Source of the DNA: Oopsacas minuta
Taxonomy: Eukaryota > Animalia > Porifera
DNA: 11,934 bases
Assembly (NCBI GenBank): GCA_024704765.1
Contig: JAKMXF010000157.1
Span: forward strand, 1 to 11,934
Direction of reading: 5' to 3'
Shown piece by piece: positions 1 through 11,768 of the stretch. Position 1 is the stretch's first letter. The number at the start of each line of letters is the position of its first letter. The notes under the pieces were generated by a model, which saw only the letters and a list, made by a program, of their open reading frames with translations, searched no databases and had not been told where the DNA came from. The translations under genes were made by a program, and so were the position numbers.

Positions 1-1110
1 TGAATGGTAACTTTCGGAACCGTTGTTGGTTGTGATATTTATGTCATTAATGGAGAGTTCCTCCGGGGAAATTTGATTTATCCACCTCCTCTTGAAGTAA
101 TTCTTCAGCTTTTCGAGTTTTATTCCCTCAGAGTTTTCTGGCACTTGATAAAATTAAAAGTGAGAATGATTAACGTGGCTGGCAAAAATGGGATAGACAT
201 CAGCTGTTTAATATATTTTCAATTTCTTGCTTGTTACGGTATCCTTCTACAAGTCCAAGCTTTTGGGTTTTTTTCCCAGATACCCTGGGTGAAATGAACC
301 AGCATCCATAAATCTTTACCTGGGGATAAGTTTCTCGAAACGCATTTCGAGAGGCGTGTTCCCAATCTGAAATTGAGGCCAGAGGTCGAAAGTGAGGAAT
401 ATTTCGCGAGATGCTTTCCAGTATAGCTTGATACAGCTGTTGGTTTTTCCCGATCAATAAGCAGTGTATCACAGGTAGAGTGTGCATTCCCACTGAAATG
501 AACATGGTCCACAACTGATAAAATAGAATGGGTACAGTAAAGAATATCCCATCGTATTGTATGTTGGTAATTTGTGATTAAAAATCTTTCATCGGCTGTG
601 AAAAGAATACCACACCAAGTTCATTGCCAACAGAGACGCTAAATTTGTAATACTTCCCGAAGTTTGTAGTTGTTATCATGTCACTAAATTCCAATCTGTC
701 TGAGGGATCTTAGGTTCTAGAGCTTTTCTCGCCCGAAACATGGTGGATTCGCATTCTGAAAAAGATATTTCACATGCCCGTGGATCATCTCTTTGTCACA
801 TCATCGAAAACCTTCCGGAGATTAATTTGCGAGTTTCTTGTAACAGTCTTACATTTTGTTTTGAGAGCGAATAATTCAGTTTTATACGCCTCACGGTCAT
901 GATTATGCGAATTTAAGGGAGTAATCAGATCTCTTTCACGATTGAGTTACATGTTCCTTTGCAACCACCTCTGAATGAAGCACACCTTAGATAAACAAAA
1001 TTGACATTTAATTCAGAAAGAATGTATTTGTTTCCATCTGACGTAGTGAAAATCTTTCCGACAGTACGTTTAATTCCTCCAATGTATATTCCATCAAAAT
1101 AATTAGTTGT
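1..1110 (-). pseudogene. MULE (Mutator-like) transposase pseudogene, frameshifted, continues past position 1
   Basis: Joining minus-strand frames gives YLRCASFRGGCKGTC...PLNSHNH (FLYWCH/WRKY-like Zn finger, ~895-995), ISFSECESTMFRARKALEPKIP, QYDGIFFTVPILFYQLWT (first catalytic D, 542-553), LPVIHCLLIGK, SDWEHASRNAF...YPQVKIYGCWF/HFTQGIW (second D 359-367, CxxH motif), LKNYFKRRW and TTNNGSESYHS (catalytic E, ~1-33). Several frameshifts and stops are present. ORFs 200-514 and 234-512 are fragments of it. Confidence 0.93.
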
Positions 1111-1269
1111 AAATATATACCAGAGACAAAAATGTTATTAAATACGATTGAGGTGGGGAACTTGTTTGGTTCCTCCAGAGAGATCAAATTCAGTGGCAAA
1201 CAACAATATTTTTGGCTGATATGATAAAGGCATTGGAGTAGTGCATTCAACACTACATCATGAATGAAC

Positions 1270-1363
1270 CATTCTAACAAATGCAAACATATGAAAACTC
1301 ATTCTAACAAGTGCAAACTGTAGAAAATCTAACAAATGACAACTTCAAAATTATAACAAATGC
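1270..1363 (+). repeat. Degenerate tandem repeat, ~23-30 bp unit, 4 copies, core (TC)TAACAA(A/G)TG
   Basis: CATTCTAACAAATGCAAAC at 1270, CATTCTAACAAGTGCAAAC at 1300, TCTAACAAATG at 1328, TAACAAATGC at 1354. Confidence 0.8.
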
Positions 1364-1445
1364 TGCGTCTCCCAAATTATCTTGTATTAGATGGTATTCA
1401 TCCAAATCGTGAACTTAGAAATTGTTCTAGTACGATTTTAAGTGC

Positions 1446-3423
1446 CATGGATGTAGTTGAAATCCGTTGACTTAAATTAAAGATGACCGAATTTACACAG
1501 TCTAAGAAGCAAAGTACATTGGTTTAATACAAAATATCATAAAATAAGTGACACATTAAATATGAATTGGGTTTAGAAATTTAAAATAGGAACAATTTGG
1601 GTTTCAACTTCTTCAATTTTCTAGTGTTTTCTACATTAGACTTCAAGGGTAGCAGGCATTCATATTTTTAAATTTATTGGATAAGATACAGTATTAAGTA
1701 GAGGTCAATACTTTGGCTAATATATCCCACATTAGTGCACCACAACTGTTGCACATATCTCTCCATAAGTGTATGAGAATTTTCTAGATGAATCGGTAAC
1801 AAAACTACCCAGTAAGCCTGGTTGATTCTCAATAGCAGAGAACAATTTCTACAATGTAATAATTGCGTCGATCACACAACTACTTGGCCATTTAAGAGCC
1901 GCGGTCGATCTGAATTAACGATTTCAACCTTCTTTCTGTTTCAAGTATCTGGCAGTAGCTAATGTGGTATTGTGGTCCTGACATCATTCGGTATAATCCA
2001 AAGTGATGCTCAAGGGGATCATTTTGCAGAAATGAAGACAGTACATACAAATATCCACAATTTTCAGTGAGATGGTTAACAATAGACGGAAGTGCAGGCA
2101 AGAGTGACGAAAACTGGAAAAAGTTTGAGGACTTAATTACCATTTTGTCAGGCATGGCGCGCCAACAATTTGCCAAATCAACTACACGTTGGAGAAAACT
2201 AAATCTAGGATCATTGTCGGTTAGTGGAATGGAAAATTCATCTTTTAGAAGGATACCCTTATTAGGAATATTGTTAGTGAAGATCTTCCATACCGTGCAC
2301 GTTATGCTAATTAAGTCGGAAGTCTGTGAATTTGTAGGAAGGTGGTATCGCAATTGGGAGTTGACATTCAATGCAGCGGCTGTTGATTTATCAAATATCC
2401 TTAATTCTAAACTAACATTCTGTCTTTCAAATGTGGAAGGCCAACAAACTTTAGAAGTTAACCTTGGAGCTAACTTACCAATTGGGTGTTGATCACTTTT
2501 GTACAATTATCGTATCTCTTCAAAACTGCAGTGTTTGAAACGTGTTACGTTCATAACGTTCATAAGATTATTATCTGGACATAAAACTTGAACAAAGAGA
2601 CCTCATGCTCCTACATTTTGAATAACTGCTTTGATTATAGGAAATATTTCAACAGCAGATTAATTAGCACAAGGAAGTGACGAACAATACTTTACCATTT
2701 CTTCGACAAACTGGATACCATGAATGCGAAAACAGTTTTAGCAAGATCAGAAAGATCCAGAGAAGATCCTATAATCTTCCCTCCCTTGTATGTAAAGTTG
2801 ATTTTGCATGAATTTCGTCCATCTGAATTACAACATTACACTCCCATCTGTTAAACTGGTGGCTGATTGCTTAAGATAGTTTATAAACTCAGAATCCAAA
2901 CCAAAATTTGAATACAACCGCTTAAGTGTAGAAAGATTTGGTAAGGATAAGCTATCTAAGGATTGTAGATATACATAACAAACTGGCGATATAAGCTGAC
3001 ATTTGAGAGAGAGTACAAGAGTTTCAAAGTTGTATCGCTTTATATTTTTCGATTTCAAAACGTTCTCTAGTTGACATAGTATGATCTTAAGACAACAAAA
3101 TACAGGCTGGCCCCCAGAGTTTTCTCCAATTGAAGGAAAGAGTAGGTCAATGAACACCTGCAGTTGCTTCTCTGACATGCTGTTGAAATATCTCAACAGA
3201 ATTAACATTGGTGGTAGCTGGATGCTGGTTATCAACTTCCTTTAGTAATAGATTAACTCCATGAGTATCATGTATCTGAGACAGGAATAGAGAAAGTCGT
3301 ACACCTTCATAGTAACCAAGAGTATGTAGTGATTCTGTAATGGTTAACGAACAACAAATCGAAATCAAACCAGTAACTGTTTTAAAAGGTTTGATCAAAT
3401 TCAGGGCTTAACCGACATCCATG
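1446..3423 (-). mobile_element. Internally deleted P-element superfamily transposon
   Basis: Inverted termini CATGGATGTAGTTGAAATCC (1446-1465) and the reverse complement of 3404-3423 (CATGGATGTCGGTTAAGCCC) match 15/20 with the first 9 identical. The CA...TG ends bracket the P transposase remnant. No 7-8 bp TSD is recognisable. Confidence 0.72.
1581..3400 (-). pseudogene. P-element/THAP9-type transposase pseudogene
   Basis: Motifs in order: CYVYLQSLDSLSLPNLSTLKRLY (HTH region), QMDEIH (first catalytic D, 2808-2822), KTVFAFMVSSLSKKW, GLFVQVLCPDNN (second D, ~2570), LYKSDQHPIGKLAPRLT, FERQNVSLELRIF, YVLSSFLQNDPLEHHFGLYRMMSG (catalytic E, 1998-2026), DRG/LKWPS, and terminal RKLKKLKP with stop at 1581-1583. 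Multiple stops and frameshifts. It covers ORFs 1892-2506, 2828-3235 and 3147-3398. Confidence 0.95.
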
Positions 3424-3523
3424 GTCCAAATTTTCACTCCAGTGAACAGGCCTTATTATAACGTAGGTCAAGGTTCAGATTTAAACTATGAATAGTAAAC
3501 TTTCCTAGTGACCCTCGTATATA

Positions 3524-3855
3524 CAGTGGACCCTCATGATATCATATCTCTCGGGCATGAGTGTTTTATGACATTAACTGAGGTATTCTATAGTCCGAGA
3601 AGTAAGTTTCCCGCTTAATGTCATACTTCTTGTCCGAATGTGACATTATCCGGGATATTATGGGAATCCAATTCATATTCGTTGTATAAATGTGCATGTT
3701 CAGTACTAAATGGCAATAGATGTAGACATAACTGTATGCAAACGAGTTTGTTCACACTGTATGTTATTTTCTGGGAAGGATACAAATCTGACCACATTTT
3801 TATTACAATATCGGGATGTGACATAACGCGATATGACAATAACAAAGTTTCTTAG
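3524..3855. mobile_element. Degenerate Tc1/pogo(Tigger)-like MITE
   Basis: Starts TA|CAGTGGACCCTC and ends ...GACAATAACAAAGTTTCTTAG|TA. Internal motif TGACAT(A/T)A / TAATGTCA recurs in both orientations. The two ends match only about half, so the right boundary is uncertain. Confidence 0.45.
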
Positions 3856-4140
3856 TACAAGAAGTAACGAAAATGTTTTGTATTTAACTTTTTATTATAA
3901 TAAGTGGGTTCTTCTATTAAGTGGTATAATAATAAACGGGATTCACTGTTTATAATACATACTAGCGCGCTTCGCTTGCTAGGTCGCTCCGCGATAGGCG
4001 GCCTTATTCTTTCCACTTCCTTCCTCGAATTTAGCTTAAGTACACATTGACTAACTTTCTTAGTGCTTTTGGTCGCTAGGCTGCTGGATATACTCAGCAC
4101 TACATGACTCGGAAAATAGAGGAATAAATGGGATAAAAAT

Positions 4141-4174
4141 AGGAACAATTTTACGAAGTGGTAAAATTGTTCCT
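4141..4174. repeat. Perfect 14 bp inverted repeat (hairpin)
   Basis: AGGAACAATTTTAC-gaagtg-GTAAAATTGTTCCT, followed by GTTACG-aa-CGTAAC at 4179-4192. Confidence 0.9.
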
Positions 4175-4503
4175 TTTTGTTACGAACGTAACACTTAGGC
4201 AGTATTAGGTTATAGTAGAGCAATTTTAAGATTGCTGTGTCAGGAGCCGATTCTCCTGAAATCATTATTTTCGCCAAATAGAACTCATGGAATTATTACG
4301 TCATCGTGTCTGTACAAAAATTGAAATCTCCAAATTTCGAAAAATTTTAGAATTTCTCACTGTACAAGGCACAAAGTGTGGAGATTACTAACCTAAAACC
4401 ACGTAGGAGCTCCAGTGTCACAACCAAAGCCCATTAAATGTAATTTCGAAGGCCCATGAAGATCAAATCTTAAAATTTCCGATGTTGTATATTCTAGCAC
4501 GAA

Positions 4504-4621
4504 GTGCTGAGTATACCCCGTCGCGTAGCGACCTAAATCACTAAGAATTTCTGTTTCATCCTTAAGCTCACTCCGAGGCACTAAGCTGTCTCACAGCGAC
4601 CTAGCAAGCAAAGCGTGCTAG
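4504..4621 (+). mobile_element. Second Helitron-like 3' end, opposite orientation
   Basis: 4595-4622 matches the reverse complement of 3961-3988 at 26/28. Patchy homology extends back to GTGCTGAGTATA (4504-4515 vs 4089-4100). Ends CTAG|T. Confidence 0.6.
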
Positions 4622-5040
4622 TATTTCATTCTTTCGGGTGCGATATACAAATTCAAAACATCATATCATTTAGGCATAATTATCCTTTCCTTAACAACGG
4701 ACAAACAAACTGACACTAAGATTGCCGTGGAAATGGAGATTCAATCCACATTCTCATATTAACAACCATTGTGATTACATAATATTCATTCGAAACATCC
4801 TGATCAGATTGTCAACTTAGTTTAATGTGAAAAACCAAAAAGTGAGATTGGCTCATACCTGCGAGAGCGAGAATTATGACGGGTACTGCTGTCCCCGTTA
4901 TCCGTTACCTGTACTGTATTACTGAATACTGAGTAACTGAGCACAACACGGATTGGTAGTTTTGTATCCGTATAAATGATGCGTATTTGATACCTGTTTG
5001 ATTACATTCTTTGTCGATTACCTCGATGTTTTTTATTCAG

Positions 5041-5097
5041 AAGACCATCTACTACAAGGAGAAAAAGCTTAATATTGGGCCCGCAATTCGCAAGCAG
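5041..5097 (+). CDS. boule: Boule/DAZ-family RNA-binding protein, exon encoding the end of the RRM (KTIYYKEKKLNIGPAIRKQ)
   Basis: Acceptor TTTTTTATTCAG| and donor |GTAAGC, 57 nt, phase 0/0. YKEKKLNIGPAIRKQ matches human BOLL YKDKKLNIGPAIRKQ at 14/15 as I recall that sequence, and DAZL has KKLKLGPAIRKQ. Confidence 0.9.
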
Positions 5098-5112
5098 GTA
5101 AGCCAATAAGTA

Positions 5113-5225
5113 CAGGGTGGCGGAATGTGCTAAATAGCGGTCAGGCCGGTCATACAATACTACAAGCCATGACAGAAAAGTAGTCAGACCATAGCCTGAC
5201 TAGCCAGACCGTTGCGCCGCCCCTG
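5113..5225. mobile_element. 113 bp MITE with CAGGG termini inside a small intron
   Basis: Left end CAGGGTGGCGGAATG vs right end reverse complement CAGGGGCGGCGCAACG (12/16). Flanked exactly by AAGTA (5108-5112, 5226-5230). Internal hairpin TAGTCAG...CTGACTA. Confidence 0.7.
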
Positions 5226-5284
5226 AAGTACATGTGGTATTTATTTATATTATTAATGTTGAGATTATTCTTTATTTATTATAG

Positions 5285-5312
5285 GGTGGGCAATTTCCGA
5301 AAGCTAACCAAG
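5285..5312 (+). CDS. boule: boule-like exon (GGQFPKANQ), 28 nt, phase 0/1
   Basis: Acceptor TTTATTTATTATAG| and donor |GTATGT. In frame with both neighbours. Confidence 0.78.
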
Positions 5313-5374
5313 GTATGTATCTAAGCTATACATACGAGATATGATACGTAATTTTATTTAAATGTTTCTATTAG

Positions 5375-5454
5375 AATTTTTAACAGGACAGATTAAGATT
5401 TTTATAAACTCCAGTCACTCACCTGTGTATACTCCTAGCAGCAGTGATAAAATT
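5375..5454 (+). CDS. boule: boule-like exon ((E)FLTGQIKIFINSSHSPVYTPSSSDKI), 80 nt, phase 1/0
   Basis: Acceptor GTTTCTATTAG| after a 62 nt intron, donor |GTGAGT. A second in-frame acceptor (TTTAACAG|, exon start 5387) is also possible. Confidence 0.72.
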
Positions 5455-5522
5455 GTGAGTTATCTTCTCTTGCATATTTCGTATTCTACTAATATCTACG
5501 TGTTTTTCATACAATATTTTAG

Positions 5523-5585
5523 AGTCCGATGATATACTCTCTCTCTCCATCACATTATATGCAATCTATCCCATATTGCCACCAC
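5523..5585 (+). CDS. boule: boule-like exon (SPMIYSLSPSHYMQSIPYCHH), 63 nt, phase 0/0
   Basis: 68 nt intron with branch-like TACTAAT (5487-5493), acceptor ATTTTTAG|, donor |GTGAGT, open frame. Confidence 0.8.
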
Positions 5586-5710
5586 GTGAGTGTATTTATA
5601 CTATTTTAATTTAATTTATCATTTCAATATGTCCTGCCTCTTTGCTTGCTGCATCAGCAAACATCTCGTTAATTGTTATATGATCCATCTGATCTATTAG
5701 TTATCTCTAG

Positions 5711-5782
5711 AATGATTCTCCTACTCCGTATTTTCCAGACCCCACACCTGCCCAAACTCCTTCTCCACTTCACTCCCTACAA
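5711..5782 (+). CDS. boule: boule-like exon (NDSPTPYFPDPTPAQTPSPLHSLQ), 72 nt, phase 0/0
   Basis: Acceptor TTATCTCTAG|, donor |GTAAGT, open frame, C-rich coding-like composition against AT-rich flanks. Confidence 0.82.
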
Positions 5783-5884
5783 GTAAGTATAATCAATATC
5801 ACGGACTTTCAACTTCGTTTTACGGTTAATTCCGAAAACAGTATTATGTACTTCTTATTATTTCGTATTCCGATAATGCAAGAC

Positions 5885-6226
5885 CAGGGATCGGTAAACT
5901 TTTGGGGTTGAGGGCCACATTCACCATTTTAAGACTTTCAGCTGGCAAATAAATTTCAAATGCTATCCTATCCTTAGCAAAGAGAATTTAATGCAAAATA
6001 GAATACAATTTTCACACTTTCTATTAATCATATCTAAATTATTTGTTTATTTATGGATATATAGAGTAAACAAATTTCCTAAATCTCAAAATAAGTGTTT
6101 AAATAAGAATATTTTGGTTGCAAACAAGGATATAGAATTAGTTATTGAAGCTAGGATGGCTGGTTTATGTGAGCTGTATCTGAAGCATGTCCTGGCTGCA
6201 TACTGCCCCCATTTTGCCAATCCCTG
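5885..6226. mobile_element. hAT (Charlie/Buster-like) MITE, 342 bp
   Basis: TIRs CAGGGATCGGTAAA / CAGGGATTGGCAAA (12/14). 8 bp TSD TGCAAGAC / TGCCAGAC (7/8). Subterminal GAGGGCCACAT is typical of this group. Confidence 0.9.
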
Positions 6227-6642
6227 TGCCAGACACAGGAAATGTAATATTGTCGTATAATAACTGAGAAATCATATTTTGGGAATCCAACGATCACATT
6301 GGTTTCTCGGAAATATTGGTGTAATTTATGTTGTGTGATATTCACACCTTTCCATACTTTGCAATATCCTTAAAATCTCGAAAGATGTAAGCTTGGACAA
6401 ATGAATCGTATTAATTTTACTTCGGGTGGAATAACTTATTACATCACTGTATAAATGATGGTGTCAATCCAAAATGCAATTCTTTCGAAATGTGCCAATT
6501 TATTTGATTTGTAAGCATTAATTTTTATCCGAATAACTTACTCTAAATTGATCTATCTTTGATGCCATTAGAGCATAAGTGTTGATCTTTGAATAAAATG
6601 TTGAAATACTGTACTAAATGACCTAAAACGTTTCTACACAAA

Positions 6643-7075
6643 ATATGAAAATTTTGTCATGATGAAGTAGGCACATTTCTGAGTTACATTTGAGACCATG
6701 GATGGCACATGTTTTGTCGATATTTACTTATTCTTCGATAATCGTTGATATTATTGTCAAGTCAGGATTACCATTTTATGGTATACACCCAACTCCCATG
6801 CCCTTGCCATGTTTTGATATGATCTCTCCAAAGATTATTCGCAATCTTGTTAATGGCTATATATGGGTATATTCATGATTACCTCATATTGGAAAGAGAT
6901 ATCTTATCAAAATGTATTATAAGGATATGCAAATTCGGGTATACTGTCTATCCTGACTTCACCATATTTGTAACGATTATAGAGTTGTAAGAGGATATTG
7001 ACAAAACACGCGTAATCCATGGTCTCAGCGATAACTCAGAAATGTGTAACTTTATCATAACAAATTCTTTGATAT
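6643..7075. repeat. Long imperfect inverted repeat (foldback element), arms ~200 bp, spacer ~30 bp
   Basis: About 72/94 identity between ~6653-6745 and the reverse complement of ~6970-7064. Exact blocks CACATTTCTGAGTTA (6672-6686 / 7032-7046) and TGAGACCATGGAT (6691-6703 / 7015-7027). Further blocks AAGTCAGGAT, GTATAC and TTTTGATA continue to the centre. Confidence 0.9.
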
Positions 7076-7622
7076 AATTGAATTTTAATACATAAGATAA
7101 GGAAAAACTTGAATTACCAAATTCCGATTGTCCATCGTCGCATAATTCTACCCCATTTTTTGTTCAAAATCCTAATGTTACTGTCAGACTATATGTAAAC
7201 TGTAGGTTATTGTTGCTTAACCTGGCCAGATATGACCTAAAACCATATTCACACTCTTTATACCTTCACCTCAGTGGCTCAAGTTTTAACAGCATTCGAG
7301 TGCTCACTGTAGTAGTACCGTTGTTCAGGGAATCAAAATTTTCTCCACAACAATGTTATACCGCAGGTTTGTACCTCGAAGCGACTGCTAATGCACCAAA
7401 TTATCATCAGATAAATATCCAATGCGATCTTATACCAGTGCGTTATTTATTACTACTTTTTATATACTTGTGTGGTGGCGTGTAACGTATAGTACGTATT
7501 TGACGTAAACTACATGCTTTATCTCTACGTATTATATAGCATAGGTACAACTATGGCCATTTTGGGTGGACAGACGTCACCTTTGCCACCTTGACTCATG
7601 AGCTTTGTTCCGCCAATGTATA

Positions 7623-7720
7623 CAGCATACTCTCGTTATATCCAACTGCTTGGGACCTCGATTTCATTTTGTTATAAGCAAACTTCGTTGTAGTCGGAGT
7701 TTCGGAATTCAGCTTAATGG
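7623..7720. mobile_element. Truncated Tigger/pogo-like MITE end
   Basis: TA|CAGCATACTCTCGTTATATCCAACTGCTTGGGACC with repeated (C/T)GTTATA / TTCGTTGTA motifs. It stops at the next element and no partner end was found. Confidence 0.5.
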
Positions 7721-8314
7721 CAGGGGCGTACAGAGATTGCAATAAGTGGTAGGGCCAAGGTAGGGCCAGTGGATCGCCTATAGAGCCAACTTTGGAGTTT
7801 CAGAATGAGGTTTTGGGTGAACTGGAGGCAATTTTAAATAGATTTGTAAACAAATATTCAGGTTGAAATTTCTAAAGTGGGGTGGGTGAGGGGTTGTAAT
7901 TGGCAAATACACAGCAAATTGAGCTTTCCAAATGAGTTAATCGTCAGAAAATAGATTTGGGTGCTTCGCAGGCAATTTTGAATGAATTTGTAAACTAAAA
8001 TTAATATACAATTTACCTTAAGTTGGGAATCATACTTTTTATTTTGTAAGAAGCGCTCTATTGGTCATGATTTTAACATTATGTCTTAGGACAAAACTCA
8101 TTTGATTAACGAAAAAAAGTTGAAATATGAAGGTCAGAAGTGTTATATTTCTCAAAGTGGGGTGTTGAGTCTAGTTAATGATTCTCAGACACCCACTTCG
8201 GGAGATTCTTCTAAAGTAGTCTATGACAATATGTAAATATATGCTGGGGTAAAGAGATGCGAAATTGTGGTAGGGCCATGGTCCTACCTGGCCCCCCCCT
8301 TGGGTACGCCTCTG
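7721..8314. mobile_element. hAT-like MITE, 594 bp
   Basis: TIRs CAGGGGCGTAC / CAGAGGCGTAC (10/11). Degenerate 8 bp flanks CTTAATGG / TCTAATAG (5/8). GTGGTAGGGCCA occurs near both ends, with an internal ~30 bp direct repeat (AGGCAATTTT.AAT..ATTTGTAAAC) and a hairpin at 8151-8204. Confidence 0.75.
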
Positions 8315-8472
8315 TCTAATAGAACATTCGTCACTAAATTTATATATATAGTTCGTATGTGTAATCCCTCTTTATTACATAACCTATTAAACATTACATA
8401 GTTTATCAATGCGTATATTTAATTTCTTGGATTTAACTTATATTTTATTGAATCTATATTTTTGTTACCTAG

Positions 8473-8629
8473 ACATTCCACTTTCCTCACTATCCCATTC
8501 TCCTACCACCCGAGGGATTTTTCTCTTCTCATGACCATTCAGAGTCTCCCACATCTACCTGGTACAAAATGGCAAAGCAATTTCCGGAGGATAGGAGATT
8601 GTCTGAGAAACACCATTTTACTCAAATAG
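8473..8629 (+). CDS. boule: boule-like exon (TFHFPHYPILLPPEGFF...EKHHFTQI), 157 nt, phase 0/1
   Basis: Acceptor TTTTTGTTACCTAG|, donor |GTAAGT, 52 open codons in frame with the 5711-5782 exon. Linkage across the 2690 nt intron is inferred. Confidence 0.72.
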
Positions 8630-8678
8630 GTAAGTAAAATGCAAGTTTCTATATTATTAATTGTTAATTTGCAATCAG

Positions 8679-8692: not shown

Positions 8693-8774
8693 GTTTGGAC
8701 TGGGGTATGAATTTATAATTTATCTAAAGAGAATATTTCGCACCATTAAAGTAAAATCAAAATATTGTTAGATG

Positions 8775-9771: not shown

Positions 9772-9930
9772 ATTGGAGCGTGCTCCAATCGCGCTCCTTT
9801 TTCATTCTTTCAGATTTACATTAGACGAGCCTTTGGCTCGTTGCTTCGCGATTAACTCGGCGCATTGCGCCTCGAGGTATTTAACGGACAAACAAATAGA
9901 CAAACAACAATTGAGGTTTAATAATATTGA
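9772..9930 (-). mobile_element. Helitron-like fragment with GC-rich hairpins
   Basis: Minus-strand start A|TCAATATTATTAAACCTCAATTGTTGTTTGTC. ACGGACAAAC...ACAACAATTGAG.TTTAATA is shared with 10208-10240. Three hairpins lie at 9772-9875. Confidence 0.5.
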
Positions 9931-11332: not shown

Positions 11333-11768
11333 ATTAGTCTATATGTTCGGGATTGAACTGGAAGACCCTCAGGACTGATTTTTTGCCATACAGGGGTATT
11401 TTTGGTCTGTCTCGGACAAATTTTGAGTTTGGACGAAAATCACACCTGTGAAGACATCATGACAACATTGACACCCTTTTGGATAATCGAAAATCACATT
11501 ATTAACCACTGCTCAGTCAATATATATTATAGAAGTTTGAAATTTGAATCACAGATACCCCTCAATATTTTAAATGTCCTGACGTCATAATTTTGGCGAA
11601 ATCATGACCTGTGTGGGTCACTAAAACTGTCGCATAGCGACCTAGCAAGAGAAGCGCGCATGTATGTTAGTATTTCGAGGATTGATTGAAGAAACTTTAA
11701 GACCCCAGTTGCTGATTTTGGGATCTAGGGGTATTTGGCCCTGGCTCGGACAATTTTGAGTCTGGGAC
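11333..11768 (+). mobile_element. Head-to-tail tandem of the Helitron-like family: one ~330 bp unit plus the truncated start of a second
   Basis: 11636-11659 matches the family 3' motif at 23/24. TGACGTCATAATTTTGGCGAAA is shared with the minus-strand 4270-4303 region. ~11346-11437 is repeated at ~11675-11768 (TTCG.GGATTGA, AAGACCC, AGGGGTATTT, CTCGGACAA.TTTTGAGT). Confidence 0.65.

Follow-up and report, generated by a model that had tools for sequence, protein, structure and literature searches.

We conclude, with a probability of about 90%, that positions 5041 to 8638 (plus strand) of scaffold C157 of the glass sponge Oopsacas minuta (Hexactinellida) hold the 3' part of boule, a single-copy gene in this species, that the assembly has broken this gene ahead of these exons, and that its transcript is spliced at either of two closely spaced acceptors before exon 5. 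The window, by which we mean the whole stretch of DNA analyzed, is the entire scaffold of 11,934 nt, AT-rich eukaryotic DNA with a GC content of ∼36%. The genome searched comprised 61,460,524 bases in 365 contigs, and the published O. minuta genome is described as 365 scaffolds, ∼61 Mb and 36% GC (PMC10280926). Two public proteins (P0001 and P0006 in our numbering) recur throughout: KAI6656088.1 (also A0AAV7K4I0), a GenBank gene model, and A0A1W5RSD2, a transcriptome-derived protein of 183 amino acids deposited as “boule [Oopsacas minuta]”. Database searches were run exon by exon, and the only whole queries were proteins already in databases. A preliminary description of this DNA had recognized a gene of the Boule/DAZ family here; that finding is correct but was already known.

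The preliminary description had proposed six exons with AG/GT borders, compatible phases (0, 1, 0, 0, 0) and an uninterrupted frame of 152 codons, and all of these hold in the sequence. The features on which the argument rests are as follows.

1 to 5040, plus strand: 3' part of the long intron ahead of the last RNA recognition motif (RRM) exon, reaching the scaffold start, with transposon remnants throughout.

5041 to 5097, plus strand: exon 1, KTIYYKEKKLNIGPAIRKQ, encoding the final strand of the Boule RRM together with the extension C-terminal to it; both borders in phase 0; residues 103 to 122 of A0A1W5RSD2.

5285 to 5312, plus strand: exon 2, GGQFPKANQ and one further base, an exact match to residues 123 to 131 of A0A1W5RSD2; a phase-1 intron follows.

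5375 to 5454, plus strand: exon 3, (E)FLTGQIKIF...SSSDKI, 100% identical to residues 132 to 158 of A0A1W5RSD2, with the same border in KAI6656088.1.

5523 to 5585, plus strand: exon 4, SPMIYS...IPYCHH, residues 159 to 179 of A0A1W5RSD2.

5701 to 5715, plus strand: alternative, short start of exon 5, LSLE followed by TGA at 5713 to 5715; acceptor AG at 5699 to 5700; predicted to give the 183-residue isoform.

5711 to 5782, plus strand: putative exon 5, a Pro/Ser/Thr-rich stretch of 24 codons; acceptor AG at 5709 to 5710; the form chosen in the preliminary description and in the GenBank model (KAI6656088.1).

5783 to 8472, plus strand: intron 5, 2,690 nt, containing an inverted repeat (6672 to 7046) and an AATAAA at 5948.

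8473 to 8638, plus strand: putative exon 6, with 52 codons up to a GT at 8630, 100% identical to residues 106 to 157 of KAI6656088.1.

This exon chain exceeds chance expectation. The exons are all preceded by AG and followed by GT, the acceptors are pyrimidine-rich, the donors read GTAAG, GTGAG or GTATG, and the lengths (57 + 28 + 80 + 63 + 72 + 157) add up to 457 nt, or 152 codons and one base, with no in-frame stop. Sites of the form GT[AG]AG number 19 on the plus strand of the window, and the four that fall within 5041 to 5800 are all used donors. The exons have a GC content of 35 to 50% and the short introns one of 23 to 30%, except for intron 1, which is raised to 41% by an interspersed repeat inside it. 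Codon-usage log-odds, from a model trained on only 13 long open reading frames (ORFs) of the O. minuta genome against introns of the boule locus, were highest in the proposed frame for every exon except exon 4, which was a near-tie. Exons 5 and 6, with 0.387 and 0.251 per codon, exceeded the 99th percentiles of equal-length, stop-free intron windows (0.359 and 0.096, respectively). Junctions 1/2, 2/3 and 3/4, as well as the phase-0 acceptor at 5041, were confirmed by the mRNA-derived A0A1W5RSD2. Exon 3 holds a second in-frame AG 12 nt downstream (5385 to 5386), for the use of which we saw no evidence. At the 3' end, leaving the GT at 8630 unused gives the reading GK and then TAA at 8636 to 8638, as in the GenBank model, and an ATTAAA at 8745, 3' of this stop, is a possible poly(A) signal. 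A search downstream of 8630 for a phase-1 terminal exon returned only weak candidates, at 9814 and 11118, neither of which we adopted. An Rfam search of the window gave no match.

The identity of the gene follows most directly from the deposited boule protein, with which exons 1 to 4 agree at 76 of 77 positions (residues 103 to 179); the sole mismatch is a Q that KAI6656088.1 takes from the intron at its false start. A0A1W5RSD2 was the one further protein returned by a word search with KAI6656088.1. A0A1W5RSD2 carries one N-terminal RRM (RRM_1, 63.6 bits) with Boule-type RNP2 (PNRVFVGG) and RNP1 (GISKGYGFITF) sequences. Its homologues are annotated as “protein boule-like” in Dysidea avara, Corticium candelabrum, Oscarella lobularis, a crinoid, a jellyfish and many vertebrates; DAZL and nematode DAZ-1 come after these, all top named matches being boule-like. 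Its best single-domain match in PDB is the mouse DAZL RRM (77.6 bits, residues 39 to 123), the alignment running through the KKL.LGPAIRKQ segment. In a maximum-likelihood tree of RRMs, A0A1W5RSD2 was placed with sponge Boule sequences and apart from the nearest other O. minuta RRMs, with weak support for the ingroup split (46/87). By sequence identity, its RRM is 71% identical to the nearest sponge Boule versus at most 46% to any other RRM of the O. minuta genome. Within the window itself, the Boule extension KKL[NK][IL]GPAIRKQ is encoded exactly at 5062 to 5097, directly past the last beta strand, and among 105 database proteins collected for comparison, the exact KKLNIGPAIRKQ occurs in 66, nearly all of the Boule/DAZ family. 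Thus the family assignment of the preliminary description stands, both on the match of exons 1 to 4 to the deposited protein and on the KKLNIGPAIRKQ extension, and the RRM phylogeny it had proposed as a check likewise sets the full RRM of A0A1W5RSD2 with sponge Boule and not with a non-DAZ family.

We considered whether the gene might belong to another RRM family (Musashi, hnRNP A/B, DAZAP1 or RBM24/38), with only its last strand resembling Boule. The exons taken singly leave some room for this: no exon has a Pfam match, and the ORF piece containing exon 1 found only DAZL chains among the 177,635 PDB sequences, aligned to KKLKLGPAIRKQ, in a weak match (E = 0.35). Set against this are the grouping of the full RRM with Boule and the existence in O. 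minuta of a Musashi-like gene (C363/C115) and an RBM24/38-like gene (C300) at separate loci and with different sequences, and we regard membership of another family as extremely improbable. The preliminary description had left undecided whether the gene is a divergent orthologue or a paralogue. GPAIRKQ is encoded once in the whole 61-Mb genome, at 5077 to 5097, and the gene is therefore a single-copy orthologue; the paralogue half of that suggestion falls.

Several other RRM sequences came up in the genome searches. Partial RRM matches on C115 and C363 were tried as boule exons and rejected, as they belong to a two-RRM gene of the Musashi/hnRNP type, and KGYGFV matches elsewhere were rejected as belonging to the RBM24/38-like gene and other RRMs, none of them Boule-like; the RNP1 of O. 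minuta Boule has KGYGFI at this place, and its coding sequence is probably interrupted by an intron. The two-RRM gene, which is Musashi/hnRNP A/B-like and built of short exons, lies at C363:168000-174100 (minus strand) and at C115:16469-19796; about 3.3 kb of the C363 copy is duplicated on the small C115 at ∼90% identity, as a haplotig or a recent duplication.

The locus had been called hidden and absent from the ORF track. No ORF of at least 80 amino acids covers any of the six exons, as claimed; hidden it is not, the locus being already public as KAI6656088.1, “hypothetical protein LOD99_11327 [Oopsacas minuta]”. That model has the same six-exon chain as the one proposed in the preliminary description and differs from it in its start, its end and its lack of a name. 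Its start codon is a false ATG at 5026, within the acceptor region of the intron (MFFIQ), and it ends by reading through the GT at 8630 to GK and the TAA at 8636 to 8638. A Pfam search of KAI6656088.1 found no domain, which is why the protein has remained unnamed. The absence of a domain, the false start and the label “hypothetical” all trace back to the assembly, which breaks the gene and lacks the exons of the RRM core.

Residues 1 to 33 of A0A1W5RSD2 are encoded exactly on a second scaffold, C138 (22,082 bases), at 13309 to 13211 on the minus strand, and are followed by GTAAG. Residues 34 to 102, the RRM core, were not found in the 61-Mb assembly, where a protein search returned generic RRMs of at most 46% identity. 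Patterns back-translated from the RNP2 exon and the middle exon (exon C) had no match in the genome, and tblastn on the readable parts of C138 and C157 found no RRM-core exon. Positions 1 to 5040 of the window likewise hold no RRM exon, there being no RRM_1 match on C157 and no RNP1 or RNP2 motif in six frames; this part of the window is accordingly the 3' portion of a long intron, laden with transposons, that extends beyond the scaffold start. The assembly lacks the three RRM-core exons (residues 34 to 102), and the gene is split over C138 and C157.

The lack of a visible RRM core in the O. minuta assembly weighs against our account, and it raises the alternative of a truncated, nonfunctional boule remnant whose RRM exons were truly lost, with no assembly gap involved. 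Exons B and C of the RRM core are nowhere in the 61 Mb, and the upstream 5 kb is transposon debris, both of which such a remnant would explain. Against it, the transcript-derived A0A1W5RSD2 joins an intact RRM to exons identical to those of the window, so that the genome of the animal must contain the RRM exons. The first 33 residues are, moreover, exact on C138, which holds two runs of N (1677 to 3968 and 5637 to 7409, or 2.3 and 1.8 kb), and C138 and C157 are both short. True loss thus seems to us very unlikely, and we retain a gene broken by the assembly.

The deposited protein and the gene model part ways at exon 5. Two acceptor AGs lie 10 nt apart ahead of this exon, at 5699 to 5700 (exon from 5701) and at 5709 to 5710 (exon from 5711). 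After ...CHH, A0A1W5RSD2 continues with LSLE and ends, and translation from 5701 gives exactly LSLE followed by TGA at 5713 to 5715. Hence, while junctions 1/2, 2/3 and 3/4 of the preliminary splice model were borne out by A0A1W5RSD2, its exon-5 acceptor was not, the mRNA-derived sequence using the one for 5701. We propose that boule may yield at least two mRNA forms through these neighboring acceptors. Use of the acceptor for 5701 would shift the frame, bring in a stop after four codons and give the deposited 183-residue protein, with the AATAAA at 5948 as a possible poly(A) signal of this short form; use of the acceptor for 5711 would leave exons 5 and 6 in one open frame and give a protein of ∼257 amino acids, near the typical size of Boule. 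The choice between two sites 10 nt apart would then set whether the long tail is made. We also observed that, with intron 5 spliced, the stop at 5713 to 5715 would lie 67 nt before the last junction, a typical configuration for nonsense-mediated decay.

We consider the long isoform through exons 5 and 6 likely. Both exons are in the public gene model, have favorable codon usage and strong splice sites, and bring the protein to ∼257 amino acids, close to the ∼30 kDa typical of Boule (Shah 2010). Over its first 26 residues, exon 6 aligns to the tail of Corticium Boule at an E value of 2e-4, and exon 6 was the top match of that tail among 890 open pieces of the window (E = 0.021). Several observations pull the other way. 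The only mRNA-derived protein, A0A1W5RSD2, ends ahead of exons 5 and 6; their splicing and the use of the acceptors were judged from a gene model and that one protein, and the codon model behind their scores rests on the 13 ORFs mentioned above. Their resemblance to other Boule tails is weak: the other eight of nine tails tested gave no match to exons 5 and 6, and with a profile built from six sponge tails exon 6 came first in the window, but at an E value of 5. No database protein besides KAI6656088.1 carries these exons (the protein library searched with exon 6 held 1.84 billion proteins), and no candidates came from a word search that used exon 6 to look for short fragments.

These same points favor a gene in which only exons 1 to 4 and the stretch from the 5701 acceptor are coding, the protein being 183 residues long and exons 5 and 6 belonging to the 3' untranslated region (3'UTR) or an intron. 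The deposited protein ends in LSLE and a stop precisely as predicted from the 5701 acceptor, an AATAAA follows at 5948, exons 5 and 6 occur in no other database protein, and most comparisons with other Boule tails fall short of significance. The chaining of these exons could moreover be explained by the abundance of AG/GT-flanked open frames in AT-rich DNA, ∼6.6% of 52-codon windows in intron 5 being open by chance. On the other side, the codon usage of both exons is not only above the 99th percentile of open intron windows but best in the proposed frame, and both have strong splice sites. The alignment of the start of exon 6 to the Corticium tail, together with the rank of exon 6 as the top window match of that tail, is a further point against this alternative, as is length: a tail of 61 residues would fall below the 97 to 211 residues of other sponge Boule proteins. 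We therefore hold a gene limited to the short protein to be unlikely, though it is the most serious of the alternatives, and prefer a gene with two acceptors and a long form.

The exons after exon 1 encode a low-complexity tail rich in Ser, Pro, His and Tyr. In vertebrates the BOLL tail carries the motif GYPYTYHNGVAYF, with GFTYTYLNGVAYF in the crinoid and NGTW[YF]F in homoscleromorph-like sponges. The preliminary description had remarked that the tail lacks the BOLL motif, and indeed a profile built on the GYPYTYHNGVAYF region of vertebrates and the crinoid, searched against all open pieces of the window, had no significant match, the best being exons 4 and 5 at E values of 0.5 to 0.9. The Pfam DAZ repeat matched no single exon, KAI6656088.1 or A0A1W5RSD2. 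It did not match the vertebrate BOLL P0021 either, and the 2017 study saw no conservation of the DAZ domain outside vertebrates (PMC5381599), so the DAZ motif does not discriminate. Among the matches, DAZL occurred only in vertebrates.

A bolder idea would join the switch between 183 and ∼257 amino acids to a conserved tail motif, TFHFPxxPILLPPEGFF, that O. minuta would share with homoscleromorph Boule (TWYFPDPLLQPQPGFY) and that would be older than the DAZ motif. We think this rather doubtful. Within it, the motif and the bilaterian NGVAYF stretch could possibly go back to one ancestral element. If true, a conserved motif in the Boule tail would contradict the published view that the tail is not conserved across animals.

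The intron positions of the RRM bear on the age of the gene structure. A phase-0 intron before KTIYY is seen directly at 5040/5041. We infer that introns would interrupt A0A1W5RSD2 after residue 33, after ..PYD (54), near SKGY (86) and before KTIYY (102). The introns missing from the assembly are marked by read-through ORFs from a related glass sponge (P0063) and from homoscleromorph-like sponges (P0101 and P0064). The intron before KTIYY would occupy the same position in another sponge, judging from the read-through protein P0064 compared with P0008, and the position after GG-x4 is the point at which aberrant vertebrate models diverge. According to Shah 2010, animals from sea anemone to human share three junctions inside the RRM. 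An old, shared phase-0 intron before the last RRM segment, vertebrate DAZL and BOLL included, is plausible on these comparisons. As a separate observation, P0063, P0101, P0102, P0064 and P0066, from metagenome and Logan collections, are sponge boule genes translated without splicing; the stretches that come from introns start with V (GT.) and end with Q (CAG), which reveals intron positions without genome annotation.

The window also holds several repeats and transposon remnants. Upstream of the boule exons lie decayed transposase ORFs on the minus strand, at 203 to 514, 1892 to 2506 and 2828 to 3235; the one at 203 to 514 is a remnant of a MULE (Mutator-like element) transposase by a subthreshold match (E = 8e-5), and the other two have no Pfam match. 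An element resembling a miniature inverted-repeat transposable element (MITE) occupies 3957 to 4624, whose 39-nt terminal inverted repeats are 85% complementary and which encloses a further inverted repeat at 4057 to 4547, and a third copy of its terminal repeat stands near the scaffold end, at 11627 to 11667. Within intron 5, the inverted repeat at 6672 to 7046 has 97-nt arms that are 76% complementary and 181 nt apart, and is probably a foldback or MITE element. The repeat in intron 1 (5114 to 5245) has copies of 75 to 91% identity on at least seven scaffolds (C177, C111, C25, C55, C210, C295 and C188).

Boule and DAZL proteins bind mRNA 3'UTRs through a single RRM and activate the translation of meiotic and gametogenic mRNAs. 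By homology, O. minuta Boule would bind the 3'UTRs of germ-cell mRNAs by its RRM and promote their translation in gametogenesis. Exon 1 would supply the last strand and the conserved basic extension, which align with solved DAZL RRM structures, and the tail presumably serves partner binding or self-association. Germline genes including boule are expressed during gametogenesis in Oscarella lobularis (PMC5381599), and boule has been reported from all four sponge classes, the O. minuta transcriptome included, with an origin in Holozoa under discussion (Fierro-Constain et al. 2017, PMC5381599). The preliminary description had suggested that, should the species be an early-branching animal, the gene would bear on when Boule arose. 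The species is a glass sponge and indeed an early-branching animal, as that suggestion needed; given that boule of four sponge classes was published in 2017, the locus sheds no new light on when Boule arose. In the O. minuta genome paper, boule goes unmentioned (PMC10280926). The value added here is a repair of the annotation: KAI6656088.1 can be named as the 3' portion of boule, its false start and the missing RRM exons can be flagged, and the difference between deposited cDNA and genome model can be put down to an alternative acceptor that shifts the frame. A genome-based census could otherwise mistakenly record boule as missing or degenerate in this “compact genome lacking core genes”.

Compared with known Boule and DAZ proteins, the closest counterpart is A0A1W5RSD2, which is the same gene: its residues 103 to 179 are encoded by exons 1 to 4 of the window and residues 1 to 33 by C138, its RRM core has no counterpart in the assembly, and it ends at LSLE, whereas the window model runs on through exons 5 and 6. 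Among sponge Boule proteins, the RRMs of Corticium and of the JGI protein P0008 are 69 to 71% identical to that of O. minuta, and the RRM of Dysidea is 64% identical. The RRM ends in KKLNIGPAIRKQ in Corticium, P0008 and one of two Oscarella copies, whereas the other Oscarella copy has RKK and Dysidea has KKLNVSKAIRKQ. A GGQ[FY] stretch follows the RRM in most of the sponge Boule proteins compared, and the longer GGQ[FY]...NQE[FY]x[NT]G, directly past the RRM, is common to O. minuta, Dysidea and P0011, which lends further support to the acceptor at 5375. Farther along, the Corticium tail reads TWYFPD-PLLQPQPGFY where exon 6 of O. minuta reads TFHFPHYPILLPPEGFF; the sponge tails are otherwise unalignable to that of O. 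minuta and differ in length. The vertebrate proteins BOLL and DAZL, the latter represented by the mouse DAZL RRM structures 2XS2, 2XS5 and 2XSF, have the same architecture as the O. minuta protein, a single RRM followed by the KKL[NK][IL]GPAIRKQ extension.

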